Below, piece after piece: positions 15,418-50,280 of a stretch of 64,000 nt of DNA. The notes beneath the pieces are model-generated. The model had not been told where the DNA came from, made no database searches, and saw nothing but the letters and a program-made list of their open reading frames with translations. Numbering within the stretch: the first letter of the stretch is position 1; every line of letters starts with the position of its first letter. The stretch comes from Haliotis rubra (taxonomy: Eukaryota). The translations under genes were made by a program, and so were the position numbers. The stretch is from NCBI RefSeq assembly GCF_003918875.1, contig NW_025767188.1:62001-126000 (forward strand), given 5' to 3'.

Positions 15418-15699
15418 GTCTCCACAGCTGTCGGATCTTCTGCTGACCCCCCACGTCGCACACATGAGTGAACGTCACACCTTTGAAAAATAGTTGTTGT
15501 TTTCAACCAAGACCCAAATTCTTGTAGGAATACCATCTCAGAATTGCAGGAACAGTGCCGTGTCGACGTAAAACTATATTCACTCTAACCTCGGCCAGTC
15601 CCACGGTTTACTGTTTACTCCCAAGTCCCGGGGACCATAACGAGCACTTTACTCTTAGCTCGACACAAACGGAGTACTATATATAGTATGAGATACTAT

Positions 15700-19765: not shown

Positions 19766-19887
19766 CCAGGTTTAATAACACTGTATCATTCAAACTGTGA
19801 TCGAGACACAACATAAGACGACATTAACGCGTCCTGCGCTGTCCCAGATATTAAATATTGACTTCTCGTGTCAGAGTTACTCAAATC

Positions 19888-21916
<2,029 letters not shown>

Positions 21917-26120: not shown

Positions 26121-27899
26121 TCTGGGATATCTCCACATGAGAGAGTTGTATGTACGGTCAAATGACATACGTCTGAGCTGCCCTCTGTTCAACGCGATCA
26201 ACACCTGTTACTGAATTGATTTGACAACTGAGTGGTGTAAGGGAGATAAATCGTGATGAGGTATTTATATATAGCAATAACAGCGAGCGCCTGACTGACC
26301 GACTGGGTTTGGTTTTATGCCGCTTTCAGCAATATTCCAGCAATATCACGGCGGGGGACACCAGAAATGGGCTTCACACATTGTACCAATGTGGGGATTC
26401 GAACCCGGGTCTTCGGCGTGACGAGCCAAAGCTTTAACCACTGGACTACCCCACCGCCCCGCGAACGCCTGAATAGTGTATCACCACTTGAGCTGTTCTC
26501 ATGTGTTGTAACCAGACATACGAGGGGCACATTGAAGAGCGATCGACAGCAGTTCGAGTACTGAGTCAAGTGTGAGTGAGTGAGTTTAGTTTTACGCCGC
26601 ACTCAGCAATATTCCAGCTATATGGCGGTTTGTAAATATTCGACTCTGGACCAGACAATCCAGTGATTAACAGCATGAGCATCGATCTGCGCAATTAGGA
26701 ACCAATGACATGTGTCAACCAAGTTAGCCTGACCATCCAATCCCGTAAGTCGCCTCTTACGCCAAGCATGGGTTACTGAAGATCAATATTCTAACCCGGA
26801 CCTTCACGGGTCTGCATTTCAATGTGTTTTGCCGTGTGGCTCTAGGGGACCAAACACTTTATGAATACTCTGTACTCAAGCTTATTCATTTCTGCAGTTT
26901 CGATAGGGGTACATGTGATGTCACGTAAAGTAGGGACATGTGCATGTCAACATTACGTTTATGTGAATGATATAAACCTTTCTTCAGTATCATACAGTCA
27001 TTTTTATCATGCGCATATCAGAAGTATTTCAGACTCCAACATTTTGATAGACCCTCGTAAACAGTGTACACGCCCACTTGATGGTCAACGCCGGACTCAG
27101 TTTTCCAGCCACATGTTGATGACGGTAGTTTGTATATAGTCGAGTGTTGGCTCGATAAACGAGTGATTGCTATTGTAGCAGCTTCCAAGCAGCCGGTGCA
27201 TGACAACAATTATTCTTCCTGGTGACGGAACCTATTCATATAGTCCCAATGGACGACAGGAAGATGTTCCTTGATCCTTGATAACCAGAATCCATGGGGA
27301 ATGAAGCATACGGTTCGTGAGTCAGTCTTGACCAATCTGTACACAAGTCTGTGACTGAACCGACATCATTCAGTAATCTTGAGGGTCAACGTGCGGGGTT
27401 ATGTCCAGGAGCTCTGACGGTCTCCGGTCGCCTTCACTCATTTCCGCACAGCAAAAATCTTGTCCAGTATACTTCAACATTTACTCTTAAATATCAAACG
27501 TCAGTACAGACAATGTGAAGTCTTGACCTACCTCAGAAAAGTTAGGGAGTGTTTTAACACCGGCTTTTAGCAGTATCACGGAGGGACACCTAAATGGGCT
27601 TCACACATTTGGTCCATGTGGGGAATCAAACCCGGGTCTTCTGTCTGACGAGCAGACGAGTCAACATGAATGTTCATGTTCTCCAAGGTACTACAGTTTC
27701 CATATTCAAGTCCAAACCAACAGACAACATGTGCTTTGTGAACGTGTAGAGTGTGGCAGACCCACAAAAGGATAACGGTGTGACTTATTCCTGGGTCAGT
27801 GAGTGAGTGAGTGATTGTAGTTATGCAGTCATCCAGCTATATCACAAGTGACTGAAGTTTCTAATCTTAACACTATCACAGCTATAAGACTGCGACAAT

Positions 27900-28100
27900 A
27901 AATCTTGAATCGTGACCCTGCGCATTCAAGACGATTTCAAAACACTATCACTCATTCGACATCACTCGTCCCTTTCCGTAACATGCAAACTGTCCCTGAA
28001 TGACGAGTTGATCACGAATGAACCACGTCAACCCTGGACGGAAAATCTCTTCCTGTGCCCAGTTCCCTCTACACCGGTTACCTGGCTGTCTCGGGTAAGT
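27900..28100 (+). promoter_or_regulatory. Probable TRIM promoter and non-coding first exon (paralogues at about 42475-42690 and 62425-62690)
   Basis: Block conserved in all three units, ending in a donor CTCGG|GTAAGT (CTCAG|GTAAGT in unit 3). The RING exon starts after an acceptor TTTTGGTAG, 5 nt before the ATG. Confidence 0.45.
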
Positions 28101-29228
28101 GTGTTGTCACAGGGGCTGTGTCTATTCCAGTTATAACGCTACACACCTGTCCTACTGTGTACAGGTAACACTAAAATGGTTCATCTAACTGTTAGGTCAT
28201 CTCCAGGCACATTCTCAAATCCGGGCACCTAATATACTGCAATATTTAGACTGAGCATGGTGTATGAAGTGTCTACTTTCATTACTTCCTTGATCGGCCT
28301 CTTGACTTCAATACTGAGATCTGTCCCGATGTATGTGGATGTATGTATATAATGTGTGTTTGCTAAAGTTGTTACTGAATTGATCTCAGATAAATGCTAC
28401 AGCACAAAGTATGGTAAAATACTTCTACATGACCACAATATTTGACATCTAATGTAGCGGAATCCGAACTTAACGTCTCCTACTTTCGATATGGTAATGA
28501 GCGGGTGTCGCCATGTAACTCTGTCAGGTGAATGACATGCTGCACACGGTACATAGCTGCATGTTGTAAAGCTGGTGACGACGAGTTGCAAAGATCCATT
28601 GACGAGCTGCTGACAGACAGGCCACTGATTCATGGTGCTCCGTGACACCAAAACATACCCAGTCTGTTATACTATACAATGTCATGTGGTAACGCTTGTC
28701 AACTTCAAAAGATAACATATTCCTATAGCACAATAGCACAACTCATACAACAGCACAGGGGACTGACCGCCTGACTTTCATGGCAGTGTTTCGTGAACTA
28801 AAAACCTGAACTAAATTATGAATTAATTCCGTAAAAGAATCAGCTTTAAAAGCAACAAAAACAACAACATAGAAATGTGCTGTAATTGAGAGTTGTATTC
28901 TAAAATTAACAAAGTTCCGAAATCAGTACAAAGGCACCACAACTGCCCATAAACATTCGTATTGTAGCTCAACGGTTCCAGTATGTCAGGCAAAAGAGAG
29001 AATTTTGTGTTTGTGTAAACCGTGAAATATCTGAGGGAATGTATGTTCTGTGTTTTACTTATGAAAAAGTATCCAGTATCAATATCCGGCCAAAGAAAGA
29101 ATCATCAAGACGGACAGAATCAAATAAACAGGCGGTTACTTCCTTTCATCCAGTCTCAGGTTTCTAACAATTCTCAAATACAGGATTGGTTGTGTATAAC
29201 GTGAAATATGTGATGACATGGCTGTTCT

Positions 29229-29672
29229 ATGTTTTATTTATGACCAGCAAGACAGAGCGACCCACACACGCACACATCATACACACACAATACAGACGGC
29301 CCATGTTTTATTTATGACGAGCAAGACAGAACGACCCACACACACACACATCATACTCACACAATACAGACGACCCATGTTTTATTTATGACCAGCAAGA
29401 CAGAGCGACCCACACACGCACACATCATACACACTCAATGCAGACGACCCATGTTTTATTTATGACGAGCAAGACAGAACGACCCCCACACACACACATC
29501 ATACTCACACAATACAGACGACCCATGTTTTATTTATGACCAGGAAGACAGAGCGACCCACACACGCACACATCATACACACTCAATGCAGACGACCCAT
29601 GTTTTATTTATGACGAGCAAGACAGAACGACCCACACACGCACACATCATACTCACACAATACAGACGGCCC
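29229..29672. repeat. 74-bp minisatellite, 6 copies (single copy in units 2 and 3)
   Basis: Units start at 29229, 29303, 29377, 29451, 29525 and 29599. Confidence 0.9.
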
Positions 29673-29894
29673 AGTTACAACCCGTCTACCAATGTTATCT
29701 CTCATTGATTATAGGATCTACATACATCTGGAATATGTTTTCATTCGTTCATAATTCCAAGAGCAGGATTTACTAGACATAGTTCTGTCAGTTAATCGGG
29801 ACTACAAATATGGTCGGTGTTTGTGTAATGAATGTTGTGGTTTGTATAGTGGAAAGGATGTTTATGTCGTGTCTCCTGACTTTTGGTAGGAGAG

Positions 29895-32610
29895 ATGGCG
29901 ACCTCCCAGAAGTTGACAGAACACTTCCTGACATGCACCATATGTACAGAGGTGTTTGACAAGCCCTGTACACTTGTGTGTAATCACACCTTCTGTCGGA
30001 AATGTGTCGTCAACTACACCAAAACCAGACCAGAAGCCCTCAGTGCCAAGTCTCTCCTGTGTCCATTCTGCAGGAAGATGACGAAAGTGTCTGACCCCGA
30101 GAGACCAGTGGAGGAGTGGGCGGATGACGTCAAGCCTATCTTTGTCATCCAGGGACTGTTGGACTCGTTTGGCCCCGGATCTAAAGGTGAATAGTTGTAG
30201 GTTGTAGCAATATACGTGTTGTTTACAAGCAGGTAACAGTATAATTGATTTAAGCAAAATAAATGTTTGTGATGTTATGAACATTGTATGACCCCTGCTA
30301 TGTATATACTACTATAGTTTGATGTATGTAAAAATCTGATTGTGAGGAATGTGAACTTTCATTGTGGATATGTGTTCAACGAGCAAGACACAGCATATCA
30401 GGTGACATGACCAAAGACATATATAAACCTTATTCATGATCCGTACTACAACGTTTACGGTGAGATAATTCCAAACATATTTACATGACGTTTCAACCTG
30501 AGACATGTTGATATGTTTCCGATACATTTTCTCACATGTGTCAAGTAGGAACATGATGCGACACATCCAGCCCTATAATACATTGCGATGTTACCAGGTT
30601 AATATCACCACATCTAGCCCTGTAATACATTGTGATGTCACCATGTTAATATCACCACATCTAGCCCTGTAATACATTGTAATGTCACCAGGTTAATATC
30701 ACCACATTTAGCCCTATAATAAATTGTGATGTCACCAGGTTAATATCACCACATCTAGCCCTATAATACATTGTGATGTCACCAGGTTAATATCACCACA
30801 TCTATCCCTGTAATTCATTGTGATGTCACCATGTTAATATCACCACATCTAGCCCTATAATACATTGTGATGTCACCATGTTAATATCACCACATCTAGC
30901 CCTATAATACATTGTGATGTCACCAGGTTAATGTCACCACACGAATGAATGGTTATTTCAGATACAACTAACTGCAGTTATTGTAAGGAGGAAGGGGAGA
31001 CAACTCCAGCTACATCTTGGTGTTCTGTTTGTGACGACGCACTATGTGAACAATGTACAAGGATGCACCAACGAACCCCCTCTTTCCGTCACCATGACGT
31101 AGTTGACCTGTCTGGTGAGACAAAGGTCAAGGTCAAGAGAAAGGTCATGTGTAAAGTTCACAAGAATAAAAGGATCAAATATCTTTGTAAAGATTGTAAA
31201 ACAGCTGTTTGTCAAACATGCTGCACGATCCATCACAGGAAATGTGATATGGTTGTTGAAATTGAGTCAGAGATTCCTGCAATGAAAACCGAGCTGAAAA
31301 GGAATAAAGAGAATTTGTTAAAGAAAGACAATGAGATGAAAAGATATGTTGGAAAACAAAACTCCCTTGTCAAAGAAGAATTGGCGCTATATATACAAAT
31401 AGAATCAAATATCAAGTCTGCAAGTCTCACTGCAATACAGATGATCAAAGCCAAGGAACGGAAACTTCTGTCTGAACTGAAAGAGATGTCTGACAGACAC
31501 ATTGGACAACTGAAGGCAGACGTAAAGTCAGGTGAGATGTCAGTACAGATGTACCAACAACAGGCTGAGCTGATAGACCAGGCTCTACAATCTGAGTGTG
31601 ACATGGATGTGTATGAGATGTATCAGGGATGTGAGGCCGGTGATGTGGAGGCTGTCGGAGTCGAAGACATGAAGGAGAAGGGAAGAATAGACAGGATAAC
31701 ATTCAGACAGGACACGGACAAGCTGAGTAGAGCACTGGAAGATCTCCATCTGGGTGAGATACACGTCCAGTATGACGATGTGCTGGACCTGAAGGCTACC
31801 CCTGTGTTACAGGACACCATTAACGTGACAGTAGCAGGAGATGCAGGTGGGGGAGACCCCACTGATGTGACGGTGTTAGAGGTGAATGGTACAGACACAG
31901 TGGTAGTTACAGACTACAAGAACAACAGTGTAAAGTCCTTCTACACCAGGAACAGTCAGCCAGGTCACAGCAGGCTCAGTGTGGGAGGTGCACCACGGGG
32001 TATAACAAGGCTGAAACACAACCAGGCAGCTGTCACTGTGCCGGATACCAGTCAGATTGTAACAGTTGAAGTGAACCCTGACCTGGTGCTGCTGTCGACC
32101 ATCACAACCAGCAAACAGTACCGGGGTATAACGTCTCTGACACCATCAACACTAGCAGCAAGTTCCCACTTCCCTCCCTGTGTTGATATCCTGGATATGT
32201 CGGGACACGTGCTGAAGTCAGTTTATCCTCGCCCCAATGGCGGAGACATCTTACAGTATCCCGACTCCCTCTGTACCACGAGGACAGGAAACATCCTGGT
32301 GTCTGACTTGGGAACCAGGTGTGTCGTGTGTCTGACCCCCGAGGGAGATGTGGTGTTCAACTACAGACCTACAGGAGACACAACATGGAAGTATTCACTT
32401 GGTATCACAAGTACCAGCACAGGCGACATCCTGGTGACAGACGAACCACAACACAGAGTCATCCATCTGACAGAGTCAGGACAGTTTGTTAGAAACATAC
32501 TGACATCACAGGGTGGTGTCAAGAAACCAAGGGGACTGTGTTTTGGTGGGCGTGGTCGTATGTACTTGTGTACACCAGATGTAGTGAAGGTATTTACATG
32601 CTGTAAGTGA
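29895..32610 (+). CDS. TRIM E3 ubiquitin ligase (RING-B1-B2-coiled coil-NHL/beta-propeller; TRIM56/TRIM2/3-like), copy 1, 646 aa; exons 29895-30186 and 30962-32610
   Basis: C3HC4 RING CTIC...CNHTFCRKC...CPFC; B-box 1 CSYC...CSVC...CEQC..H; B-box 2 CKVH...CKDC...CQTC..HH; coiled coil; NHL-like repeats (PRGI, GNILVSD, GDILVTD). Phase-1 GT-AG intron; 1941 nt. Confidence 0.92.
30563..30940. repeat. 47-bp intronic minisatellite, about 8 copies, just upstream of the TRIM exon-2 acceptor (paralogue 44365-44746)
   Basis: Unit ACATCTAGCCCTATAATACATTGTGATGTCACCAGGTTAATATCACC. Confidence 0.9.
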
Positions 32611-34986
32611 GTGAACATGTCAGAACCCTTTTTTTGTATTACATATAGATATATATGTTACCTGGATAGATATGATGTGATGCACTGTAGGAACATTTGA
32701 CTTTTGATGTGAACGTGACGAATCATACTTGTAGAAAGACACAACTTGTAATGTAATGAGGGTTGGCGGGGTAGCCTAGTGGTTAAAGCGTTCGCTCGTC
32801 ACGCCGAAGACCTGGGTTTGATTCCTTACATGGGTACAATGTGTGAAGCCCATTCCTGGTGTCCCAAACCGTGATATTGCTCGAATATGGCTAAAAAGCT
32901 AAAACCATACTCTCTCACCTACTGGAATGTAATGTAATGTAATGTAATGTAAGAAGCCATTACTTCTACTTTATATTCAGATATATTGTCTCAATAACAC
33001 TATGTGGTCCAAAATCATCTAGAATATTGATATTTTGAGATGTAATGATTTTGAATCACTTTTTCTTTAAGTGACTTTGATGAACAATTGTTTTACAAAC
33101 TTTACTGAATGGGTTGTAGGTCTTATGGCATGTTTAACAGCGGTTTTCACTCTCTTCTCGACATGTTGTGTGAAAGGCATAGCAGGGCAATCGTCTTTGC
33201 TCACATTTTAGCAACTCTGTATACGTTATTCTGATCACATTTATGCTGTTCATGTTAACTCAGTGCTGGATACGGGGTCGTGTTTGATTATTACAAAAAC
33301 AGACAAACTAGTTGGAGCATGAAATCAGTTTAGAGCAGCCATGTGGCCACTGCACACTACCACTGCACACTACCACTGCACACATACACATGAAATGTCT
33401 TGCCAACTTGTGACGTGTTGTGATGTACAAACCGACAGCTCTGTCTGTTGAACAGCGGGTACGTTGGATTGACATGACAACTGAGCGGTCAAAGGGAGAT
33501 AAGTCGTTATGAGAAGTATATAAGGAGCCATAAAAGGTAGCGAGCGAATGAATAGTTTATCAGTGAGTTAGTTGCGGTTTTACGCTGCTTTTCACATTAT
33601 TCCACACATTGTTATTTGTTGGGAATCGAACCCGGGTCTTCGTCGTGACGAACGAACACTTTAACCACTGGGCTACCCCAGCCCCTATTTTATCACAATT
33701 TGTGTTTAGTGTGCGTGTTGTAAATTGATACATGCAGTGTTTATACCGACGTGTACAGTTATATACTCTCTGCTTCATATCAATCATTCACTTGATGGAG
33801 GAGTAGGAAACGTTATGTTCCTCATAACAAAGAAGTTGATATCGATAAAACTCTCTTCCTGATGTGTATCCCTTCTAAATGCCATCAAAGACCTGATGTG
33901 TTATATGTACGTAGTGATGTCTGGCTCAGTATAGAACATTGCCATTTCCTTTGCTAATATGTTATACTACCCTTGCAATTGTTCTGCCTTTGAAATTTCC
34001 AATTATGATGTGTCTTGATTTGCAAACTTGGTTACTTTTATAATACACCTGTTAATTTGTTGAATGTATTACAGTTGTTTGTTGTTTCACACTATTTTGT
34101 TTTGAGAGAGAGAGAGGGAGGGAGAGAGAGAGACAGAGAGAGAGACAGAGAGAGAGACAGAGAGAGTGACAGAGAGAGAGANNNNNNNNNNNNNNNNNNN
34201 NNNNNNNNNNNNNNNNNNNNNNNNNNNNNNNNNNNNNNNNNNNNNNNNNNNNNNNNNNNNNNNNNNNNNNNNNNNNNNNNNNNNNNNNNNNNNNNNNNNN
34301 NNNNNNNNNNNNNNNNNNNNNNNNNNNNNNNNNNNNNNNNNNNNNNNCTCCAGGGTCCCGTACTACAAAACAACCGTAGCTCTAAGGTTACCTTATCTCC
34401 TCAAGTTTTAACCTTAGGCCTTTGCTAAGGTTGACGTCCCGTTGTACGAATCTACCTTACGCTAAGGTAGCCTTAGTTAAGGTGAAATTTTAAGGTTGGT
34501 CCGACCCAACCTTAGTGTGGCTAAGGCTGACAGAAGACCTTTACCCAAAACACCCTCTGTTTACTCTGCGGCGTAAAACGCTATTCACACAACCACCCAC
34601 TCGCCCACTGAGAAACTGGATACTGCAACCGCAACTCGTCAATGGTCGAGTTTATACCTTTCAAACTTCAAACACATGTCATCGTATCCCAGTTGTGTAG
34701 ATCGATGCTCATGCAGTTGAGCACTGGATTGCCTGGTCCAGACTCGATTATTTACAAACCACCGCCATATAGTTGGAATATTGCTGAGTGCAGCGTTAAA
34801 CAACAACAACTATTAAGCTTGGCTGAATCTTTTTGGTCTGCAATAGACAGAGGTATCCTGTTAAATAGGTGCGATTCCTCACATGGGTACTAATTTCTGG
34901 TGATATTTCTGGAATATTGCTAAATGCGGCGTAAAATGAAACTCACTCACTCCTTTTTAACAGTCAGTTGTTGTGTGGTATGTGTA

Positions 34987-35500
34987 TAGCTTTAATCTGC
35001 ACACACACTATTGGCATATATAGACCCAACACAGAAATCTCAATATTAGGTACCCGTAATGGTGGCCAGATCTAGCTTTAATCTGCACACACACTATTGG
35101 TATATAAAGACCCAACACAGAAATCGCAATATTAGATACCCGTAATGGTGGCCAGATATAGCTTTAATCTGCACACACACTATTGGCATATATAGACCCA
35201 ACACAGAAATCTCAATATTAGATACCCGTAATGGTGGCCAGATATAGCTTTAATCTGCACACACACTATTGGCATATATAGACCCAACACAGAAATCTCA
35301 ATATTAGGTACCCGTAATGGTGGCCAGATCTAGCTTTAATCTGCACACACACTATTGGTATATAAAGACCCAACACAGAAATCTCAATATTAGGTACCCG
35401 TAATGGTGGCCAGATCTAGCTTTAATCTGCACACACACTTTTGGCATATAGACCCAACACAGAAATCGCAATATTAGATACCCGTACTGGTGGCCAGATC
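34987..35500. repeat. 84-86-bp minisatellite, 6 copies (paralogue 48367-48790, 5 copies)
   Basis: Unit TAGCTTTAATCTGCACACACACTATTGGCATA...GGTGGCCAGAT. Confidence 0.9.
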
Positions 35501-36108
35501 TGTTGCATGATTAATGATGCACTGCTGGGTTTGGGAACATATGTTCTTATGCATTTTCAAAGCGATATTGGACCAAGTCGAGTGTCCCTCAGTGACATTG
35601 GTTCAATACAAGTCACACAACGACGCTACAGATGGGTACTTTAGCAAGTTGAATAACACAAGGGGCTCTTTGAGTGACTATTCCTACACCTACTATAAGA
35701 GTAGCAACATGTTAACACATTTTCATTGTCCATATCACTGCCCATATTAAGTGGTATACTAGTGTACACGTGTAACGTCATAATTTATCACGTTGTGACA
35801 CCCATGGAGATTGTTTAGGTAAACATTCCGTGACAAAAATAGATACAGAGAGTGAAAGTGAGAGTGAGAGTAAGAGTATATGTCGTATAATGGCCTCATG
35901 GCCCAGGGTACAAAATATACATGATTGTTTGTTTGTGCGCATACAATACATAAACATAAATATAATGCATCACTGTATAGCAATCAAACAGGTAGGTTTC
36001 TCTTCAGGTAGACTGCTAGGCTTTTGATAACATTCATATTTTTTGTGCATAACAACTGGTTCAACTTAAATACAGATGGATTTATATGATAATAACCAGG
36101 AATATAGA

Positions 36109-36215
36109 AGGCCTCTTCTCCGTGTTTTCCAGAGACCCAGCTACAATTCTGATGATTTGACTCGACGCTATCGGTATGTTAATGAGTATTTATTACAGTT
36201 ACTTGTTTGCACAAC
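36109..36215 (+). pseudogene. Relic of ARF-A exon 1 (3' part plus donor)
   Basis: AGGCCTCTTCTCCGTGTTTTCCAGAGACCCAGCTACAATTCTGATGATTTGACTCGACGCTATCG|GTATGT aligns to 19923-19993; in-frame TGA replaces GGA. Confidence 0.85.
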
Positions 36216-36322
36216 TTCAAGCTTCAAATATTTCAAATCATAAAATATCTACTTATTTGTTGGTTCATTAACTTATCATAAATGAACATATTTTAATATT
36301 CATTTGCGATTACTCCCACTCG

Positions 36323-36480
36323 TAAAGGTGGATAGTCATATGAATAGCGCCTAGGTATTGAAAGGTGGATAGTCATATGAATAGCGCCTTGGTATCGGAA
36401 AGGTGAATGGTGATATGAAAAGCGCCTAGGTATAGGAAAGGTGAATGGTGATATGAATAGCGCCTAGGTATAGGAAAGGA
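36323..36480. repeat. 37-38-bp tandem repeat, about 4 copies
   Basis: Unit AAAGGTGGATAGTCATATGAATAGCGCCTAGGTAT. Confidence 0.8.
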
Positions 36481-39400
36481 AGCTCATTGGTGACCATCTC
36501 CATGAGAGCTCGGGAGCATTTGTGTACAAATGTATCCATGGTGTAACTCCACGTCGAGCCCTATATATAGATTACAAATAACTTTCGTTGTTAGACTGTG
36601 TTCAGAATGGTGTCAAGACAGCTGATGCATGGCAGTTGCTAGCCTTGTAGCCTTGTGGAAGAACAGCATCCTGAAATCAGACGGAAGAGTCTTCTGTGTT
36701 GATCCAGAGCCACCAGGACAAAGACTGCAACCATTATTTAACTCATCCTATGGTCCTGTACAGGCGATCGTTTCCACGACAGAAGTGATTGACTTGCTCT
36801 GCGAGGGTTACATTGCTAACACCGTTTCAATGTAACTTTTCTCTTATTTCGTATGTATCTCGAGCTCTTAGCATTTACTAGTGGTAGTGTAGCCTCACGA
36901 CTAGTGGTAGTGTAGTCTCACGACTAGTGGTAGTGTAGCCTCGGGACAAGTGGTAGTGTAGCCTCACGACTAGTGGTAGTGTACCCTCACGGCTAGTGGT
37001 ATTGTAGTTTCACGGCTAGTGGTATTGTAGCCTCATGACTAGTGGTAGTGTAGCCTCACGGCTAGTGGTAGTGTAGCCTCACGACTAGTGGTAGTGTAGC
37101 CTCACGACTAGTGGTAGTGTAGCCTCACGACTAGTGATAGTGTAGCGTCACAGCCAGTGGTATTGTAGCCTCACGACTAGTGGTAGTGTAGTCTCAGGAC
37201 TAGTGGTAGTGTAGTATTACGACTAGTGGTAGTGTAGCGTCACGACTAAATGGTAGTGTAGCCTCAAGGCTAGTGGTAGTGTAGCCTTACGACTAGTGGT
37301 AGTGTAGCCTCACGACTAGTGGTAGTGTTACCTCACGACTAGTGGTAGTGTAGCCTTATGACTAGTGGTAGTGTAGCCTCGCGACTAGTGGTAGTATAGC
37401 CTCACGACTGGTGGTAGTGTAGTGGTTGTGTAATCACACGACTAGTGGTAGTGTAGCCTCGAGAATAGTGGTAGTTTAGCGCCACGACTAGTGGTAGTGT
37501 AGCCTCACAACTAGTGGTAGTGTAGTCACGCGGCTAGTGGTAGTGTAGTGGTTGTGTAGTCACACGACTAGTGGTAGTGTAGCCTCACGACTAGTGGTAG
37601 TGAACCTTCACGACTAGTGGTAGTGTAGTCACTCGACTAGTGGTAGTGTAGCCTCATGGCCAGTGGAAGTGGTGCCTCACGACTAGTGGTAGTGTAGCCC
37701 CAAGACTAGTGGTAGTGTAGCCTCAAGGCTAGTGGTAGTGTAGCCTTACGACTAGTGGTAGAGTAGTATTACGACTAGTGGTAGAGTAGCCGCACGACTA
37801 AATGGTAGTTTAGCCTCAAGGCTAGTGGTAGTGTAGCCTTACGACTAGTGGTAGTGTAGCCTCACGACTAGTGGTAGTGTTACCTCACGACTAGTGGTAG
37901 TGTAGCCTTATGACTAGTGGTAGTGTAGCCCCAAGACTAGTGGTAGTGTAGCCTCACGGCTAGTGGTAGTGTAGCCTTACGACTAGTGGTAGTGTAGTAT
38001 TACGACTAGTGGTAAAGTAGCCGCACGACTAAATGGTAGTTTAGCCTCACGGCTAGTGGTAATGTAGCCTCACGACTAGTGGTAGTGTAGCCTCACGACT
38101 AGTGGTAGTGAAGCCTCGCGACTAGTGGTAGTGTATCCTCACGACTAGTGGTATTGTACTCACGCGACTAGTGGTAGTGTAGCCTCACGACTAGTGTTAG
38201 TGTAGCCTTACGACTAGTGGTAGTGTAACCTCACGACTAGTGGTAGTGTAGCCTCACGACTAGTGGTAGTATAGTAACGCGACTAGTGGTAGTGTTGCCT
38301 CACGACTAGTGGTAGTGAAGCCTCACGACTAGTGGTAGTGTAGCTTCACGACTAGTGGTAGTGTAGTCACGCGACTAGTGGTAGTGTAGCCTCACAGCTA
38401 GTGGAAGTGCAGCCTCACGACTAGTGGTAGTGTAGCCCCACGACTAGTGGTAGTGTAGCCTCACGACTAGTGGTAGTGTAGTCTCGCGACTAGTGGAATT
38501 GTAGTCACGCGGCTAGTGGTAGTGTAGCCTTACGACTAGTGGTAGTGTAGCCTCACGGCTAATGGTAGTGTAGCCTCACGACTAGTGGTAGTGTAGCCTC
38601 ACGATTAGTGGTATTGAAACCTCGCGACTAGTGGTAGTGTATCCTCTCGACTAGTGGTAGTTAAGCCTTACGACTAGTGGTAGTGTAGTCTAACGACTAG
38701 TGGTAGTGTAGCCTCACGACTAGTGGTAGTGTAGCCTCACGACTAGTGGTAGTGTAGTCTCACGACTAGTGGTAGTGCAGCCTTGCGGCTAGTGGTAGTG
38801 TAGTCTCACCATATATATGTATTTACTACATGTGTGCTTAATGATCCAGGAATTGTATCTACTTGTTTGAAACTTGTAATTATCAATAAATATTGCAACA
38901 GTTTAATTCAAGCGTATTTCTGAATTGTGCTGTTTACGCTTTGATGAGAAATGTAGACACATCTATTTGTGATCCACGAGTGATTGACTGAGTGAGTGAG
39001 TTTAGTTTTACGCCGCACCCTGCAATTTTCCAGCTATTTGGCGGCATTCTGCAAAATAATCGGATCTGGACCAGATAATCTGGGGATCAACAGCATGAAC
39101 ATCAATCTAATCAATTAGGATACGATGACATGTGTCAACCCAGTCAGCGTGCCTGACCACCCGATCCCGTTATAGTCGCCTGTTACGAAAAGCATAGGTT
39201 ACTGAAGATCAATTCTAACCCTGATGTTCACGGTGTCTCACGAACTGCCATGAATCACGGAAGGAGGTCACAGAGGACATATAATGAAAGTAAAACGCCA
39301 AGAAGGCATAGTGACGACGATCTATTGGCCGTGATAAAAAACATACTAGTATACGAACAAAGATGTATGCTTTTTGGTTTTGATACCTTTGTGTGATACA

Positions 39401-39912
39401 TTAACAGTAAATACATAAACAGTGACATGACACGCCATGGTGGGTTTGGGAGGACCTTGCAGATGCAGAACAGGTAGCCTACAGATGTAGAGCAGGTAGC
39501 CTACAGATGTAGAGCAGGTAGCCTACAGATGTAGAGCAGGTAGCCTACAGATGTAGAGCAGGTAGACCACAGATGTAGAGCAGGTAGACAACAGATGTAG
39601 AGCAGATAGACTACAGATGTAGAGGAGGCAGACTACAGATGTAGAGGAGGTAGACTACAGATGAAGAGCAGGTAGACTACAGATGTAGAGCAGGTAGACA
39701 ACAGATGTAGAGCAGATAGACTACATATGTTTCTGGGATATCTCCACATGGGAGAGATGTGTTTACGGTCAAATGACATGCGTCTTCTGCCTTGTGTTCA
39801 ACGCGATCAACACCTGTTACTGGATTGATTTGACAACTGTGCGGTGGAAGGGAGATAACTCGTGATGAGGTATTTTTATAGAGCAATAACAATAATAGTG
39901 ATAGCAATAATT

Positions 39913-41713
39913 TTGTTGTTATCGCAGTTTGCACAAGGTGAGGTGTGGTGAGGTGAGGTGAGGTGTGGTGTGGTGAGGTGAGGCGAGGCGAGGTGAGGTG
40001 AGGTGAGGTGAGTTTTACGTTGTGCTTGAGAATATTTCGCTCATATGACGACGTGCATGCATGAGTAAGTGTGTGTGTGGCTGCTTGTACTAGCCCAGAT
40101 TTAAGCCGGTTTTATAGTGCTAGCCCACTGAGATACCATGCCGCAGTGAAGCATGAATACCCGACTCAGACACATTATACTGACTCCGATCCGACTAGTC
40201 CTTGTACCCATTAATGTCGAGCGCCAGGCAGGGACCAACAAGTACCATATTTTAAGGTCTTTTGGCATGACGCGGTCAGGGATCGAGCCCGCGACCTTCC
40301 GCTCTCGGGGCGGACGCTCTAACCACCACATCACGGAGGCGGTCTCTAAACACAACGTAGTGATGGGTGCTACAGCACTCGTACATCGGGTAGCTTTGGA
40401 TTGGCCATCCGATGCTGCTCGTATGTTTCCGGGTGTGATCGAGGCACGTGATCAACTTACCCGCCAAATCTGACAGATGACAATTAGGAGATCAAGACGA
40501 GACACTGACGACTACGGACACGAATACTTCGCAGAACCCTATAAAGTTGATCTCCCCACTCATCATCACTTACGAAGCAAGGTAAGCGCCTTTCCCTATC
40601 ACCTGGCTTTCACAACAACAAATAATGGCAAAGTATCTCAATCGAAGGTTTTATAGTGTATCAAATATATCTTTCCATGCTTATCATTATGTCTATATGG
40701 ACAGTTTACACTGACTCGGTTTGGTTTTGGTCTATTGTATTCGTCCGTTTGAATCCAGGGACTTGTTCAGATGGGACTGATCACACTTTACGCATTACTA
40801 CTAGAACACACTGAAGAATTTTCTTTTTCACTAGCTGACAGTTAATGAGATAGAAAAAGATTTGTCAGTTCTATTTTTTTCATCTATATTTATTATATCT
40901 ATTATCAGCTGTTAAGGAGGTTACAGGTCTTTATCATTTTATGTATATTTTGCAGATTTATATGACTAAGTATCACGACAAATAACCGATGCTTTACACG
41001 TGTATGGAAATCGAAAATGTAATAAAACTGATGTTTGATGCACCATATCAGAGACGATACATCGACTTCTCCCAAAACATATACTAACGAATTTAGGGTA
41101 CTTCTGTACTGTATACAGTAGTGAGATCGAACTTATCGACTTCCGTAACGGTACGTATTTCATAGAAAAGATTATCACCATACTTAAACCTTTACGGACA
41201 AATTTAGCAGAAGACGCATTTTATGAAATAAAGCTGAAAGTTACTTAATAATCTTCATAAAATCATGAACCTCGAACGTAACTATTTCAGTGTTCCCATA
41301 CTGATGTATACCGGAATACAGGCTCAACACATTGATCATTGCCGTTATCATGACTGCAAATGTTACCGTGACCGAGGAAAAATTAATTCAGTATCTAATC
41401 AGTTTTCCATGAACATGTGATAGGCAAGTGGCTTGCATACCAGTGTGCAGTAGGTCTATTCAAAACATAGTCATAGTTGGGATCGTCCCACGGTTGTATG
41501 TTGTCAACTGGTGGAATCGTCGTTAATACTGTTAGTGTACTGAATATTTACAAATAGATGTAAATGTATGTTCTGTAAACATGCTGAACATTGTTATTAT
41601 ATTGTTATTATATTGTTTCAGGGTTTAGCGTGTACACTGAATTCTCAAGCCACTTGGAAGTAAACTTACAACCCTGCCTTCACTTTGCGTGTTGTCACTG
41701 TGACCCAGCCACA
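39913..41713 (+). mobile_element. Right part of a solo-LTR-like element (left part preserved at 54539-55915)
   Basis: Ends ...CCAGCCACA|TGTT; the unit-3 copy begins TGTT|TGTGGCAG. The empty site CCAGCCACA-TGTT-GATGAC is at about 27105-27123. This gives TG..CA ends, a TGTGGC/GCCACA inverted repeat and a 4-bp TSD. Confidence 0.65.
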
Positions 41714-43695
41714 TGTTGATGACGGTAGTTTGTATATAGTCGAGTGTTGGCTGGATAAACGAGTGGTTGCTATTATGGCAGCATCCAAGCAGCCGGTGTA
41801 TGACAACAATTATTCTTCCTAGTGACGGAGCCTATTCAAAGAGTCCCCATGGACGACATGTTCCTTGATCCTTGATAACCAGAATCCCATGGGAATGAAG
41901 CATACGGTTCGTGACCGTTGTTAACCACAAGCAAGTCTTGACCAATCTGTACACTTCTGAGAATGTACCGACATCTTTCATTAATCTTCAGGGTCAACGT
42001 GCGGATGTCATGTCCAGGAGCTCTGACGGACTCCGGTCGCCTTCTTTGATACCAGCACAACAAAATCTCGTCAAGTATACCTCAGCATTTACTCTTTAAA
42101 CGTCAGTACAAAAACATGTCCAGTCCAGTCCTCAGAAAAGTTAGGGATTGTTTTAACACCGCTTTTAGCAGTATCACGGCGGGACACCTAAATGGGCTTC
42201 ACACATTTGGTCCATGTGGGGAATCAAACCTGGGTCTTCTGTCTGACGAGCAGACGCGTCAATATGAATGTTCATGTTCTCCAAGAAAAACTGTTTTTCA
42301 TATTCAAGTCCAAACCAACAGACAGCATGTGCTTAGTGAACGTGTAGAGTGTAGCAGACCCACAAGAAGATAACGGTGTGACTTATTCCTGGGTGAGTGA
42401 GTGAGTGAGTGACTGTAGTTATGCAGTCATCCAGCTATGTCACAGGAGCCTGACACTATCACAGCTATAAGATTGCGACAATAAATCTTGACTCGTGACC
42501 CTGCGCATTCAAAGCGAAATCAAAACACAATCACTCATTCGACATCACTCGTGCCTTTCCGTAAATGCAAACTGTCCCTGAATGACGAGTTGATCACGAA
42601 TGAACCACGTCAACCCTGTACGGTATATCTCTTTCTGTGCTCAGTTTCCCTCTGCACCGGTCACCTGGCTGTCTCGGGTAAGTGTGTTGTCACAGGGGCT
42701 GCGTCTATTCAAGTGATAAGCTACACACCTGTCCTACTGTGTACAGGTAACACCACACTGGTTCATCTAACTGTTGGGACATCTCCAGGCACATTCTCAA
42801 ATCCGGGCCCCTGATATTCTGCAATATGTAGACTGAGCATGGTGTATGAAGTGTCTATACTTTCATTACTTCCTTGATCTGCCTGTTGACTTCAATACTG
42901 AGGTCTGTCCCAATGTATGTGGATGTATGTATATAATGTGTTTTTGCTAAAGTTATCACTGAATTGATCTGAACTAAATTATGAATTAATTCCGCAAAAG
43001 AATAAGCTTTGAAACCAGTAGAAACAACAACAAAGAAATGTGCTGTAATGAACATTTGCATTCTAAAATTAACTAAGTTCAGAAATCAGTACAAAGGCTA
43101 CACAACTGCTCATAAACTTTCGTATTGTAGCTCAACGGTTCCAGTATGTCAGGCAAAAGAGAGAATTTTGTGTTTGTGTAAACCGTGAACTATCTGAGGG
43201 AATCTATGTTCTGTGTTTTACGTATGAAAAAGTATCCAGTATCAATATCAGGCCAAAGAAAGAATCTACAAGACTGACAGAATCAAACCAACACACGGTT
43301 ACTTCCCTTCATTCTATATCCAGCTTCTAACGCTTCTAAAATACAGGATTGTTTGTGTATAACGTGAAATATGTGAGGGAATGGCTGTTCCATGTTTTAC
43401 GTATGACCAGAAATACAGAGCCATCCACACACGCTCACATCATGCACACACAATAAACACGGCCCAGTTGAAACCCGTCTACCAATGTTATCTCTCATTG
43501 ATTATAGGATCTACATACATCTGAATATGTTTTCAATCGTTCATAATTCCAAGAGCAGGATTTACTAGACATAGTTCTTTTAGACCTGTCAGTAAATCGG
43601 GACTACAAATATGGTCGGTGTTCGTGTAATGAATGTTGTGGTTTGTATAGTGGATAGAATGTTTATGTCGTGTCTCCTGACTTTTGGTAGGAGAG

Positions 43696-46464
43696 ATGGC
43701 GACCTCCCAGAAGTTGACAGAACACTTCCTGACATGCTCCATATGTACAGAGGTGTTTGACAAGCCCTGTACACTTGTGTGTAATCACACCTTCTGTCGG
43801 AAATGTGTCGTCAACTACACCAAAACCAGACGGGAAGCCATCAGTGCCAAGTCTCTCCTGTGTCCATTCTGCAGGAAGATGACGAAAGTGTCTGACCCCG
43901 AGAAACCAGTGGAGGAGTGGGCGGATGACGTCCAGCCTATCTTTGTCATCCAGGGACTGTTGGACTCGTTTGGCCCCGGATCTAAAGGTGAATAGATGTA
44001 GGTTGTAGCAATATACGTGTTGTTTACAAGCAGGTAACAGAATAATTGATTTAAGCAATATAAATGTTTGTGATGTTATGAACATTGTATGACCCCTGCT
44101 ATGTATATACTAGTATAGTTTGGTGTATGTAAAAAAACTGTTTGTGAGGAATGTGAACGTTCATTGTGGATATCTGTTCAACGAGCAAGACACAGCATAT
44201 CAGGTGACATGACCAAAGACATATATAAACCTTATTCATGATCCGTACAACAACGTTTACGGTGAGACAATTTCAAACATATTTACATGACGTTTCAACC
44301 TGAGACGTGTTCCGATGTTTCCGATACATTTTCTCACATGTGTCAAGTAGGAACATGATGCGACACATCCAGCCCTATAATACATTGTGATGTCACCAGG
44401 TTAATATCACCACATCTAGCCCTATAATACATTGTGATGTCACAATGCTAATATCACCACATCTAGCCCTATTATACATTGTGATGTCACGAAGTTGATA
44501 TCATCATATCTAGCCCTATAATACATTGTGATGTCACCAGGTTGATATCATCATATCTTGCCTTATAATACATTGTGATGTCACCAGGTTAATATCACCA
44601 CATCTAGCCCTATAATACATTGTGATGTCACCAGGTTAATATCCCCACATCTAGCCCTATTATTAACACATTGTGATGTCACCAGGTTAATATCACCATA
44701 TCTAGCCCTATAATACATTGTGATGTCACCAGGTTAATATCACCACACGAATGAATGTTTATTTCAAATACAACTAACTGCAGTTATTGCAAGGTGGGAG
44801 GGGAGACAACTCCAGCTACATCTTGGTGTTCTGTTTGTGACGACGTACTATGTGAACAATGTACAAGGATGCACCAACGATTCCCCTCTTTCCGTCACCA
44901 TGACGTAGTTGACCTGTCTGGAGAGACAAAGGTCAAGGTCAAGAGAAAGATCATGTGTAAAGTTCACAAGGACGAGAATATCAAATATCTTTGCAAAGAT
45001 TGTAAAACAGCTGTTTGTCAAACATGTTGCACCATACATCACAGGAAATGTGACATGGTTGTTGAAATTGAGTCAGAGATTCCTGCAATGAAAACCGAGC
45101 TGAAAAGGAATAAAGAGAATTTGTTAAAGAAACACGATGAGATGAAAACATATGTTGGAAAACAAAACTCCATTGTCAAAGAAGAATTGGCGCTATATAT
45201 ACAAATAGAATCAAGTATCAAGTCTGCAAGTCTCACAGCAATACAGATGATCAAAGACAAGGAACGGAACCTTGTGTCTGAACTGAAAGAGATGTCTGAC
45301 AGACACATTGGACAACTGAAAGCAGACATAAAGTCGGGTGAGATGTCAGTACAGATGTACCAACAACAGGCTGAGCTGATGGACCAGGCTCTACAATCTG
45401 AGTGTGACATGGATGTGTATGAGATGTATCAGGGATGTGAGGCCGGTGATGTGAAGGCTGTCGGAGTCGTAAACGTGAAGGAGAAGGGAAGAATAGACAG
45501 AATAAAATTCAGACAGGACACGGACAAGCTGAGTAGATCACTGGAAGATCTCCATCTGGGTGAGATACACGTCCAGTATGACGATGTGCTGGACCTGAAG
45601 GCTGCTCCTGTGTTACAGGACACCATTGATGTGCTGGACCTGATGGCTACCCCTGTGTTACATGACACCATTAATGTGACAGTAGCAGGAGATGCAGGTG
45701 GAGGAGACCCCACTGACGTGACGGTGTTAGAGGTGAATGGTACAGACACAGTGGTAGTTACAGACTACAACAACAACAGTGTCAAGTCCTTCTACACCAG
45801 GAACAGTCAGCCAGGTCACAGCAAGCTCAGTCTGGGAGGTGGACCCTATGGTATAGCAAGGCTGAAACACAACCAGGTGGCTGTCACTCTGCTGTATACC
45901 AGACATATTGTAACAGTTGAAGTGAACCCTGACCTGGTGCTGCTGTCCACCATCACAACCAACAAACATTACCGGGGTATATCGTCTCTGACACCATCAA
46001 CACTAGCAGCATGTTCCCACTACCCTCCCTGTGTTGATATCCTGGATATGTCGGGACACGTGCTGAAGTCATTTTGTCGAGGCCACAGAGGTAGAAACAT
46101 CTTAATGTATCCCGACTCCCTCTGTACCACGAGGACAGGAAACATCCTGGTGTCTGACCGTGGAACCAAATGTGTCGTGTGTCTGACGCCCGAGGGAGAT
46201 GTGGTGTTCAACTACAGACCTACAGGAGACACAGTACTGAAGGATCCATTTGGTATCACAAGTACCAGCACAAGCGACATCCTGGTGACAGACACCTCAC
46301 AACACAGAGTCATCCATCTGACAGAGTCAGGACAATTTGTTAGAAACATACTGACATCACAGGACGGTGTGTGGTATCCAAGGGGACTGTGTGTTGGTGG
46401 GCGTGGTCGAATGTACTTGGTGTGTGCATTAGATGTAGTGAAGGTGTTTACACACTGTGAGTGA
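43696..46464 (+). CDS. TRIM-NHL copy 2; exons 43696-43987 and 44768-46464; canonical exon-2 acceptor mutated, possibly an incipient pseudogene
   Basis: Same domain architecture with both exons open. Acceptor reads TTTCAA rather than the TTTCAG of copy 1. 45-bp in-frame internal duplication at 45583-45672. Confidence 0.8.
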
Positions 46465-49189
46465 GAGAACATGTCACAATCTCTTTCTGTATGTTAAATA
46501 TAGATATATGTTACCTGGATAGATATGATGTGATGCACTGTAGGAACATTTAACTTTTGATGTGAACGTGACGAACCATACCTGTTGTAGAAAGGTATGG
46601 TGGTTAAAACGCTCGCTCGTCACGCCGAAGACCTGGGTTTGATTCCTTACATGGGTACAATGTGTGAAGCCCATTTCTGGTGTCCCCTGTCGTGATATTG
46701 CTGGAATATTGCTAAAAAGCTAAAACCATACTCTCTCACCTGCTGGAATGTAATTTAATGTAATGTAATGTAATGTAATGTAATGTAAGCAGCCATTACT
46801 TCTGCTTTATATTCAGATATATTGTCTCAATAACTATGTGGTCCAAAATCATCTGGAATATTTATATTTTGAGTTGTAATGATTTTGAGTCACTTTTTCT
46901 ATAAGTGACTTTAATAAAGAATTGTTTTACAAAATTTAATGAATTGGTCAAATGGGACAAATTAGTGGTCAAAGGGAGATAAGTCGTTATGAGAAGTATA
47001 CGAAGAGCCATAAAATGTAGCGAACGAATGAATAGTTTATCAGTGAGTTAGTTGCGTTTTTACGCTGCTTTTAACATTATTCCACACATTGTAAGTTGTT
47101 GGGAATCGAACCCGGGTCTTCGTCATGACGAACGAACAATTTTTTACCACTGGGTTACCCCAGCCCCTATTTTATCACAATTTGTGTTTAGTGTGAGTGT
47201 TGTACATTGATACGTGCAGTGTTTATACCGACGTGTACAGTTATATACTCTCTGCCTCATATCATTCATTCACTTAATGGAGGAGTAAGAAACGTTGTGT
47301 TCCTCATAATAAAGAAGCTGACATCGACAAAACTCTCTTCCGGATGTGTATCCCTTCTAAATGTCATTCAAAGACCTGATGTGTTACATGTACGTAATGA
47401 TGTCTGGCTCAGTATAAAAGATTGCCATTTCCTTTGCTAATATGTTGTNNNNNNNNNNNNNNNNNNNNNNNNNNNNNNNNNNNNNNNNNNNNNNNNNNNN
47501 NNNNNNNNNNNNNNNNNNNNNNNNNNNNNNNNNNNNNNNNNNNNNNNNNNNNNNNNNNNNNNNNNNNNNNNNNNNNNNNNNNNNNNNNNNNNNNNNNNNN
47601 NNNNNNNNNNNNNNNNNNTCTGAGTTTAGTTTTACGCCGTTTTTTAGCAATATTCCAGCAATATCACGGCGGGGACAGACAGGGGAGAGAGACGGGGAGA
47701 GAGGGGAGAGAGAGAGAGAGAGAGAATCTCCAGGGTCCCGTTGTACAAAACAACCGTAGCTCTAAGGTTACCTTATCTCCTTAAGTTTAACATTAGGCCT
47801 TTGCTAAGGTTGACGCCCCGTTGTACGAATCTACTTTACGCTAAGGTAGCCTTAGTTAAGGTGAAATTTTAAGGATGGTCCGACCCAACCTTAGTGTGGC
47901 TAAGGCTGACAGAAGACCTTTACCCAAAATACCCTCTGTTTACTCTGCGGCGTAAAACGCTATTCACACAACCACCCACTCGCCCACTGAGAAACTGAAT
48001 ACTGCAACCGCCACTCGTCAATGGTCGAGTTTATACCTTTCAAACTTCAAACACATGTCATCGTATCCCAGTTGTGTAGATCGATGCTCATGCTGTTGAT
48101 CACTGGATTGCCTGGTCCAGACTCGATTATTTACAGACCACCGCCATATAGTTGGAATATTGCTGAGTGCAGCGTTAAACAATAACTATTAAGCTTGGCT
48201 GAATCTTTTTGGTCTGCAATAGACAGAGGTATCCTGTTAAATAGGTGCGATTCCTCACATGGGTACTAATTTCTGGTGATATTTCTGGAATATTGCTAAA
48301 TGCGGTGTAAAATGAAACTCACTCACTCACTCCTGTTTAACAGTCGGTTGTTGTGTGGTATGTGTATAGCTTTAATCTGCACACACACTATTGGCATATA
48401 GACCCAACACAGAAATCGCAATATTAGATACCCGTAATGGTGGCCAGATCTAGCTTTAATCTGCACACACACTATTGGCATATAGACCCAACACAGAAAT
48501 CGCAATATTAGATACCCGTAATGGTGGCCAGATCTAGCTTTAATCTGCACACACACTATTGTCATATAGACCCAACACAGAAATCGCAATATTAGATACC
48601 CGTAATGGTGGCCAGATCTAGCTTTAATCTGCACACACACTATTGGCATATATAGACCCAACACAGAAATCTCAATATTAGATACCCGTACTGGTGGCCA
48701 GATCTAGCTTTAATCTGCACACACACTATTGGCATATATAGACCCAACACAGAAATCGCAATATTAGATACCCGTAATGGTGGCCAGATCTGTTGCATGA
48801 TTTATGATACACTGCTGGGTTTGGGAACATATGTTCTTATGCATTTTCAAAGCGATATTGGACCAAGTCGAGTGTCCCTTAGTGACATTGGTTCAATACA
48901 AGTCACACAACGACGCTACAGATGGGTACTTTAGCAAGTTGAATAACACAACGGGCTCTTTGAGTGACTACTCCTACACCTACTATAAGAGTAGCAACAT
49001 GTTAACACATTTCCATTGTCCATATCACTGCCCATATTAAGTGGTATACTAGTGTACACGTGTTACGTCATAACTTATCACGTTGTGACTCCCATGGGGA
49101 TAGTTTTGTTAAACATTTCGTGACAAAAATAGATACAGAGAGTGAGAGTAAGAGTATATTTCGTATAATGGCCTCATGGCCGAGAGTAC

Positions 49190-49885: not shown

Positions 49886-50280
49886 TAAATATATCCCTCC
49901 ACGCTAGAGCCTCGTCGACTATATAAACCAGGTTTAATAATACCGTATCATTCAAGCTCTGATCGAGACACACCATTAGACGACATTAACTCGACCAACC
50001 TTGATCAAGGACTAGAGTGCTGTCTCAGATATTGAATATTGACTTCGTGTGTCCAAGCTACTCAAATCATTAGTGATATCATGGATAAACTTGCTGACTT
50101 TACAGGCCTGTTCTCCGGGTTTTTCAGAGACCCAGCTAGAATTCTGATGGTTGGACTCCATGCTGCCGGTATGTTAAGTAATATTTGTTTGCAGCTACTT
50201 TTTTGCACAACTTGTTATTGACATGAACACATTCTAATTTTACAGGATACATTTGGTATTTCAATCATGCTTTATGTATT
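49886..50280 (+). pseudogene. Relic of the ARF-A core promoter, exon 1 and start of intron 1
   Basis: Aligns to 19724-20098. TATA is kept, the original ATG has become ATT, a new in-frame ATG lies at 50081 (MDKLADFTGLFSGFFRDPARILMVGLHAAG), and the donor at 50169 is intact. No exons 2-4 follow. Confidence 0.9.

Follow-up and report, generated by a model that had tools for sequence, protein, structure and literature searches.

The window analysed here, 64,000 nucleotides of the genome of the blacklip abalone, Haliotis rubra (RefSeq assembly GCF_003918875.1, contig NW_025767188.1, positions 62,001 to 126,000), holds two tandem TRIM-NHL genes on the + strand, hereafter copy 1 and copy 2, each made of a RING exon and a large last exon. 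Our sequence comparisons, structural models and codon analyses make it very likely that selection acts on the top face of the propeller formed by their NHL domains. The two genes are members of a large abalone-specific tandem family of predicted E3 ubiquitin ligases, in which the RING, two B-boxes and a coiled-coil helix of ~110 residues would form a constant module for ligase activity and dimerisation, and the six-bladed NHL propeller would form the target-binding module. Positive diversifying selection would bear on the top face, to which each of the six blades contributes its d-a and b-c loops, and purifying selection on the strands, the bottom loops and the ligase module, while duplication and gene conversion or unequal crossover between neighbours would shuffle framework and loop segments. 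The outcome would be a germline repertoire of propellers with differing binding faces on one common effector, each paralogue presumably recruiting a different target to ubiquitination or sequestration. Leaving its driver aside, we regard this explanation as a whole as probable, and we infer that the top face is the target-binding surface and the family a specificity repertoire mounted on one ligase module.

The structural argument starts from the copy 1 propeller, which was modelled with AlphaFold2 from 33 aligned paralogues. The propellers of the two copies lie as follows:

31804..32607, + strand: copy 1 NHL domain, whose 268 residues form a six-bladed propeller; residue r starts at 31804+3(r-1) (AlphaFold2, Foldseek, sequence matches to the Protein Data Bank).
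45658..46461, + strand: copy 2 NHL propeller (gap-free alignment to copy 1 up to residue ~255).

The copy 1 model (predicted local distance difference test, pLDDT, 91.3; predicted template modelling score, pTM, 0.90) has 24 strands forming six four-stranded blades closed by the N-terminal strand. Foldseek matched it to the NHL domains of TRIM2, TRIM3, Thin, Lin41, TRIM71 and Brat with template modelling (TM) scores of 0.78-0.85, and phmmer retrieved the NHL structures of Thin, TRIM2, TRIM3, Brat and TRIM71. By definition, the b-c and d-a loops of an NHL propeller make up its top surface and the a-b and c-d loops its bottom surface, the top surface of Brat being an RNA-binding platform (PMC4015489). 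With residue classes assigned from DSSP alone (79 top-loop, 40 bottom-loop, 145 strand and 4 terminal residues), the 45 differences among the 268 propeller residues of copies 1 and 2 are distributed very unevenly: 32 of the 79 top-loop residues differ (59% identity), 10 of the 145 strand residues (93%), a single one of the 40 bottom-loop residues (97.5%) and two of the four at the termini. Mapping the RNA-contact residues of Brat onto the abalone propeller by sequence alignment was tried and dropped, as the blades align out of register.

A first-pass annotation of this DNA had listed seven short patches that differ radically between the two copies, and all of them occur exactly as written in the sequence and the alignment: APRG/GPYG, VPDTSQ/LLYTRH, VYPRPNGGD/FCRGHRGRN, DLG/DRG, TWKYSL/VLKDPF, DEP/DTS and VKKP/VWYP. 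It had placed them before the PxG-type motifs and after the V(S/T)D motifs, which in the model are the start of strand a and the end of strand b, so that the patches are d-a and b-c loops; these are the loops that it had equated with the ligand- or RNA-binding top face, in agreement with what is published for Brat (PMC4015489). Its description of the remainder as nearly identical is roughly right, given the identities of strands and bottom loops and only 5 differences in the 103 residues of the RING exon. In copy 1, the patches and the selected sites described below fall in these loops:

31981..32052, + strand: top loops of blade 2, d1-a2 (residues 60-66, 'VGGAPRG') and b2-c2 (residues 80-83, 'PDTS'), patches 1-2; selected sites 61, 63, 65, 80 and 81.
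32224..32319, + strand: top loops of blade 4, d3-a4 (residues 141-152, 'YPRPNGGDILQY') and b4-c4 (residues 169-172, 'LGTR'), patches 3-4; selected sites 142, 145, 152, 154, 155, 169 and 172.
32365..32454, + strand: top loops of blade 5, d4-a5 (residues 188-200, including 'TWKYSL') and b5-c5 (residues 214-217, 'EPQH'), patches 5-6; selected sites 214-216.
32503..32580, + strand: top loops of blade 6, d5-a6 (residues 234-244, including 'VKKP') and b6-c6 (residues 257-259), patch 7; selected sites 240, 241, 243 and 258.

Selection was estimated on a codon alignment of 16 intact close paralogues. Nei-Gojobori counting over all 120 pairs gave a ratio of nonsynonymous to synonymous divergence (dN/dS, or omega) of 1.67 in top loops, 0.22 in bottom loops, 0.54 in strands and 0.45 in the B-box/coiled-coil part. 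Eight independent pairs returned the same value for top loops (1.67; bootstrap confidence interval 1.20-2.47, P=0.0016) and 0.27, 0.53 and 0.42 for the other three classes, and the seven pairs that remain without copy 2 gave 1.53 (P=0.009), 0.32, 0.57 and 0.40. Over all pairs dS was 0.12-0.14 in every class, which argues against a mutational hot spot as the source of the raised top-loop rate. Codon likelihoods were computed with our own scripts (GY94-type, F3x4, marginal likelihood, no ancestral sequences) on a tree of the NHL domain only. With fixed classes on one tree, omega was 2.43 in top loops, 0.30 in bottom loops and 0.69 in strands, and omega=1 was rejected for top loops (twice the log-likelihood difference, 2dlnL, 81.4); with segment-specific trees for blades 1-2, 3-4 and 5-6, top-loop omega was 2.17 (2dlnL=57.8). 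The comparison of site models M2a and M1a on the propeller (2dlnL=267) assigned 11.7% of sites to a class with omega 6.8, while the same comparison on the B-box/coiled-coil part was not significant (P=0.064) and yielded no selected site. Of 24 propeller sites selected with posterior >0.95, 18 are top-loop residues, five are strand residues adjoining top loops (20, 107, 122, 154 and 155), one belongs to the C-terminal tail and the bottom loops have none. Positive selection thus bears mainly on loops at the surface of the C-terminal recognition domain. The first-pass annotation had proposed diversifying selection on the patches and variable sites clustered on one face, and both ideas are supported: the dN/dS check set beforehand placed the top loops above 1, by counting and by both likelihood estimates, with the rest of the protein at 0.2-0.7, and 23 of the 24 selected sites lie in d-a or b-c loops or next to them.

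The same contrast could in principle arise without any adaptive change, if the loops were simply unconstrained and gene conversion homogenised the framework, so that the patches would look hypervariable only by comparison. Recombination in the family is indeed real. The pairwise homoplasy index (PHI) test detected it over all sites and over third positions alone (P<=0.001), and with weaker significance within the propeller (P=0.02). Copy 1 and the paralogue L002 show 99-100% identity as far as about codon 355, after which the nearest paralogue of copy 1 changes from segment to segment of the alignment at 90-97% identity; dS between copy 1 and L002 rises from 0.013 in the B-box/coiled-coil part to 0.05-0.09 in the propeller. 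The PHI result and the shifting nearest neighbour show that the family is a mosaic produced by gene conversion or unequal crossover, and we therefore give most weight to the tree-free estimates; a single tree for the whole gene was rejected because of recombination and replaced by the independent pairs, the NHL-only tree and the segment trees. The RING exons of the two copies (29883-30194 and 43684-43995) also differ little (K=0.019, against 0.045-0.062 in the neighbouring intron and 0.045-0.12 in adjoining intron and flanks taken together), as homogenisation would predict; five of their six differences change an amino acid, and their similarity suggests recent conversion of this exon. Nevertheless, relaxed constraint should bring omega near 1, whereas the top loops stand at 1.53-2.43, with omega=1 rejected and a class of sites at 6.8. 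The equality of dS in loops, strands and the B-box/coiled-coil part implies that the propeller framework has not been selectively homogenised at silent sites, and the bottom loops, which are equally exposed, have omega of only 0.2-0.3. Between copies 1 and 2, moreover, nonsynonymous divergence in top loops reaches 0.236 per site, three times that of noncoding sequence in their duplicon (0.074 in introns and flanks; P=2e-11). We consider the non-adaptive explanation very improbable.

The two genes belong to a large set of relatives. The genome (1.38 Gb) contains at least 107 family matches. The 838-kb contig of the window carries ~25 close paralogues (78-92% identity), and other clades (57-70% identity) are located elsewhere; several members have stop codons. 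The best 120 database relatives of the copy 1 product are all from Haliotis, and the family thus represents a lineage-specific, clustered multigene expansion. Propeller sites at which the 16 paralogues show at least four different residues number 37, and top loops account for 27 of them (Fisher P=3.8e-9). Mean entropy falls from 0.87 in top loops to 0.32 in strands, 0.28 in the B-box/coiled-coil part and 0.16 in bottom loops. The family is also present in independent assemblies of three other Haliotis species, and the same positions vary in two sets of Haliotis rufescens relatives (Spearman 0.56). In the window, the genes sit in a 13.8-kb duplicon, 29597-33114 matching 43390-46948 at 90.6% identity. 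A third duplicon begins at the end of the window, where 62293-63885 is 89% identical to 27757-29303 and has the same end of a 5' untranslated region (5'-UTR) exon at 62666-62677; its coding exon lies just beyond (G000:C2298:128513-130261) and contains an in-frame TGA. A literature search on the expansion or selection of TRIM-NHL genes in molluscs or abalone returned vertebrate analogues and no paper on the abalone family or on any family of this kind in molluscs.

As for the driver of this diversification, the most likely candidate would be a fast-evolving non-self or selfish partner, such as a virus, a parasite or a transposon product, by analogy with TRIM5alpha and the finTRIMs of fish. On that analogy we hold a role of the family in immunity or conflict to be possible, at somewhat short of an even chance. 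Its more specific form is a little more tentative still: a germline, intracellular recognition repertoire of NHL propellers, with dozens of RING-ligase genes restricting or sensing viruses (e.g. abalone herpesvirus) or mobile elements, as an invertebrate counterpart of TRIM5alpha and the finTRIMs with an independent origin on another fold. Alternatively, the top face of each paralogue might have adapted to a different cellular RNA or protein, outside any current arms race and without a part in defence. The TRIM-NHL proteins characterised so far all regulate development or RNA and use the top face for binding, LIN-41, Brat and Mei-P26 have RNA motifs of their own, and omega above 1 among paralogues records past adaptive change, which need not be a continuing conflict. 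Yet conserved regulators are single-copy genes, whereas here there are dozens of young tandem copies (dS about 0.1), with only Haliotis among the matches listed, and variation at the same sites in the Haliotis rufescens copies suggests recurrent change. In addition, the net charge of the top loops, counted from residues as a proxy for electrostatics, ranges from -6 to +9 among the 16 paralogues, that of the bottom loops only from -1 to -4; this spread speaks against an RNA motif common to all paralogues as the ligand and differs from the RNA-binding faces of PMC4015489, which are electropositive throughout. Such neofunctionalisation without conflict seems to us unlikely, if less so than the absence of any adaptive change.

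The remaining parts of the two proteins have the layout of a TRIM ligase. Copy 1 has a RING exon open reading frame (ORF) at 29883-30194 and an ORF for B-box 1, B-box 2, coiled coil and NHL at 30949-32610 (553 aa); the corresponding ORFs of copy 2 are 43684-43995 and 44755-46464 (569 aa). The copy 1 product is identical to the 646-aa RefSeq entry 'protein wech-like [Haliotis rubra]', which we used as the full-length protein, our own joining being limited to 63 nt around the splice site for a frame check. The exons, the copy 1 intron and a repeat within copy 2 are located as follows:

29888..30186, + strand: copy 1 coding exon in which translation starts (ATG at 29895) and which encodes the C3HC4 RING (Pfam, RNA-type contigs, frame check, N-terminus equal to that of the RefSeq protein).
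30187..30961, + strand: copy 1 intron, phase 1, with GT..AG ends, holding a 47-bp x 8 minisatellite at 30562-30941 (joints in RNA-type contigs, splice-site letters).
30962..32610, + strand: copy 1 last exon, encoding B-boxes 1 and 2, a long helix of presumed coiled-coil type, a disordered linker and the NHL domain up to the stop codon (Pfam, full-length model).
43689..43987, + strand: copy 2 RING exon, homologous to that of copy 1 at an offset of 13801 (tblastn, 95% identity; Pfam RING; identical donor sequence).
44768..46464, + strand: copy 2 last exon, with B-boxes, coiled coil, linker and NHL domain, its frame open to the stop codon (ORF, Pfam, homology).
45583..45678, + strand: coding 45-bp tandem repeat of copy 2, encoding the 15-residue linker unit VLDLKAxPVLQDTIx, with one unit more than in copy 1 (TRF, alignment).

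Pfam confirmed the RING in both exon-1 ORFs (zf-C3HC4, zf-RING_UBOX and others, E 1e-7 to 9e-10), and its Cys/His ligands are invariant across 59 relatives. In both copies, an ANCHR-like B-box (B-box 1) at residues 9-50 of the exon-2 ORF and a zf-B_box (B-box 2) at residues 64-97 score above the gathering thresholds. The full-length AlphaFold model contains one continuous helix at residues 198-307 (pLDDT 75-90), consistent with a TRIM coiled coil, followed by a disordered linker (324-371) and by the propeller from residue 379. The linker varies in length, as its 15-residue unit is present in one to three copies depending on the paralogue (also in L032 and L035). Between coiled coil and NHL domain, Pfam detected no filamin/Ig domain at E<=0.1, the segment being the disordered, repeat-bearing linker, and it gave no SPRY or PRY match that would indicate a B30.2/PRY-SPRY domain, so that the recognition domain is the NHL, whose repeats Pfam did detect. 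This domain layout resembles that of TRIM32 and Mei-P26, unlike TRIM2/3/71, which are of the filamin/Ig domain type.

Contigs from three small RNA-type runs, whose tissue and condition are not stated, and from one DNA run were mapped on 29600-33100. The RNA-type contigs span 29888-30184 and 30960-32650, with almost no depth at 30185-30886 and none upstream of 29834. Each of the three RNA-type runs contains a contig that skips 775 nt with GT..AG ends, whereas the DNA run spans the intron and lacks that joint; this difference, together with the splice letters, identifies 30187-30961 as the intron of copy 1, in phase 1 and in frame. The subfamily is transcribed and spliced. Loose 5' letters of the RNA-type contigs match 28081-28092 beside a GTAAGT donor, a sequence also found in two other duplicons at 42664 and 62666, which points to an upstream 5'-UTR exon.

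In copy 2, the 3' splice acceptor departs from that of its relatives. Two further positions have to be given here:

44766..44767, + strand: AA in place of the acceptor AG, directly before exon base 44768 of copy 2 (comparison with 20 paralogues).
34182..34347, no strand: assembly gap, intergenic, inside a (GA)n microsatellite and in neither gene (alignment of duplicon flanks).

The acceptor reads ...TTTCAG|ATAC in the 20 other paralogues and ...TTTCAA|ATAC in copy 2, whose ORF is otherwise intact; judged by its letters, the change may be a base error, an allele or the splice defect of a pseudogene in the making. The first-pass annotation had noted neither this change nor the mosaic structure of the family. 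The copy 1 stop codon precedes the gap at 34182-34347 by 1.57 kb; the flanks of the gap are collinear with the copy 2 unit, and the sequence after it, CTCCAGGGTCCCGT, directly follows the (GA)n run in the unit of copy 2 at 47680-47740, which is gap-free there. The idea that the gap disrupts a gene was rejected, as it is intergenic and no coding sequence or comparison spans it. Both duplicons have an assembly gap (34182-34347 and 47449-47618) beside the same GA-rich simple repeat, and the microsatellite is probably the cause of both. Such gaps near both copies, the mutated acceptor and the stop codons in several family members are what one would expect if assembly errors, collapsed paralogues or pseudogene drift had made the differences between the copies. 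Against this, the frames are open over 553 and 569 codons, the differences respect codons and include no frameshift, the gap is intergenic, and the strands and bottom loops still appear to be under purifying selection on the copy 2 lineage itself (pair L032-copy 2). The result is also the same without copy 2, and the family recurs, variable at the same sites, in the independent assemblies of three other Haliotis species. We give this artefactual origin next to no credence.

Several points weigh against the reading of a diversified binding face in a family of ligases. The term "one face" refers to strand and loop topology and to the published definition of the top face, not to measured three-dimensional positions. 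For copies 1 and 2 alone, top-loop dN/dS is 1.47, a value that falls short of significance when set against the ~10 synonymous changes of the pair (P=0.24). The tree-free top-loop estimate (1.67) is below the likelihood estimates, recombination is present and can inflate the likelihood-ratio tests of site models, and our likelihood scripts, which are not PAML or HyPhy, fix branch lengths in proportion to the nucleotide tree. The RNA contigs are 95-99% identical to the window and are not assignable to copy 1 rather than to a near-identical paralogue, and copy 2 is without a canonical splice acceptor, so one of the two genes may be non-functional. Finally, the driver in immunity or conflict is an analogy, as is the comparison with an innate-immune receptor repertoire drawn in the first-pass annotation.

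Other features of the window are repeats and fragments of genes around the two copies. Exons of ARF-like GTPases lie upstream of copy 1 (19858-21916 on the + strand; 13575-15484 and 18109-18291 on the - strand), relics resembling exon 1 of ARF are found downstream of each TRIM copy (36101-36217 and 50039-50218), and RefSeq models at paralogous loci (P0005 and P0058) join ARF sequence and the RING exon in one frame, via an acceptor corresponding to 29888. Just 3' of the copy 1 stop codon, a very high-copy element at 32759-32875, probably a SINE-like repeat, has many loose contig ends at 32768 and 32865 and a summed contig depth of ~8 million in the DNA run and of 34,000-55,000 in the RNA-type runs; Rfam gave no match on 28000-34100. 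Large minisatellites occupy the duplicon borders and the intron (36877-38809, 24068-25190, 50733-51193, 29229-29673, 30562-30941 and 34987-35501), with units of 23 bp x 83, 74 bp x 6, 86 bp x 6 and 47 bp x 8, the last being that of the intron, which reaches the acceptor. Two + strand ORFs (7647-8012 and 9321-9551) with an active-site motif like that of dual-specificity phosphatases (DUSPs), IHCMQGISRSG, are on this motif probably exons of a DUSP gene. The window also holds a remnant of a Tc1/mariner-type transposase (22952-23575, - strand), a reverse-transcriptase fragment (58896-60082, - strand) and a simple-repeat tract coding for His, Ser and Pro with strong negative GC skew (5656-7254).

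Among known systems, the finTRIMs of fish and TRIM5alpha of primates come closest. In finTRIMs, positive selection is concentrated in surface loops of the B30.2 recognition domain, and the genes form a large lineage-specific tandem expansion (PMC2657112). The abalone genes share with these systems the constant part of RING, B-boxes and, as predicted, coiled coil, followed by a C-terminal recognition domain, the tandem expansion and the focus of selection on loops. They differ in having a six-bladed NHL propeller instead of B30.2/PRY-SPRY and in their gastropod host; moreover, the variation of the TRIM5alpha B30.2 domain is found in a few variable loops, whereas the variable residues of the abalone propeller are spread over the loops of all six blades around a ring-shaped face. 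A second parallel is offered by the fungal HET-E/HNWD NLRs, in which the top face of a WD40 propeller is under diversifying selection while recombination or concerted evolution shuffles its repeats. There, the repeats are shuffled inside one gene and the effector is NACHT/HET; in abalone, the propeller is NHL and not WD40, whole tandem genes exchange segments and the effector is a RING ligase. Homology of domains and fold links the abalone genes to the canonical TRIM-NHL proteins of class VII, or subfamily C (the latter defined in PMC3503706), namely TRIM2, TRIM3, TRIM32/Thin (Abba), TRIM71/LIN-41, Brat, Mei-P26 and Wech, and in Brat and related NHL domains ligands bind the top face of b-c and d-a loops (PMC4015489, PMC9070667). 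However, canonical members number 3-5 per genome, are conserved and have an electropositive RNA-binding top face, whereas the abalone family comprises dozens of young paralogues with top-face omega above 1, loop charges from -6 to +9 and a top face that is the least conserved part.

The diversified TRIM repertoires known so far are vertebrate and based on B30.2, and a mollusc equivalent built on a propeller would show that the combination of a constant ligase with a hypervariable binder evolved more than once. The 24 selected positions provide a map for experiments on binding and specificity, and the natural loop variants show, as a ready-made library, which changes a very stable propeller scaffold tolerates. 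If the proposed role is true, the family would give invertebrate innate immunity an unstudied candidate, and this in an animal that is farmed and suffers from serious viral disease; if the driver is instead endogenous, the family would still show with unusual clarity how adaptive evolution can be confined to one face of an NHL domain.

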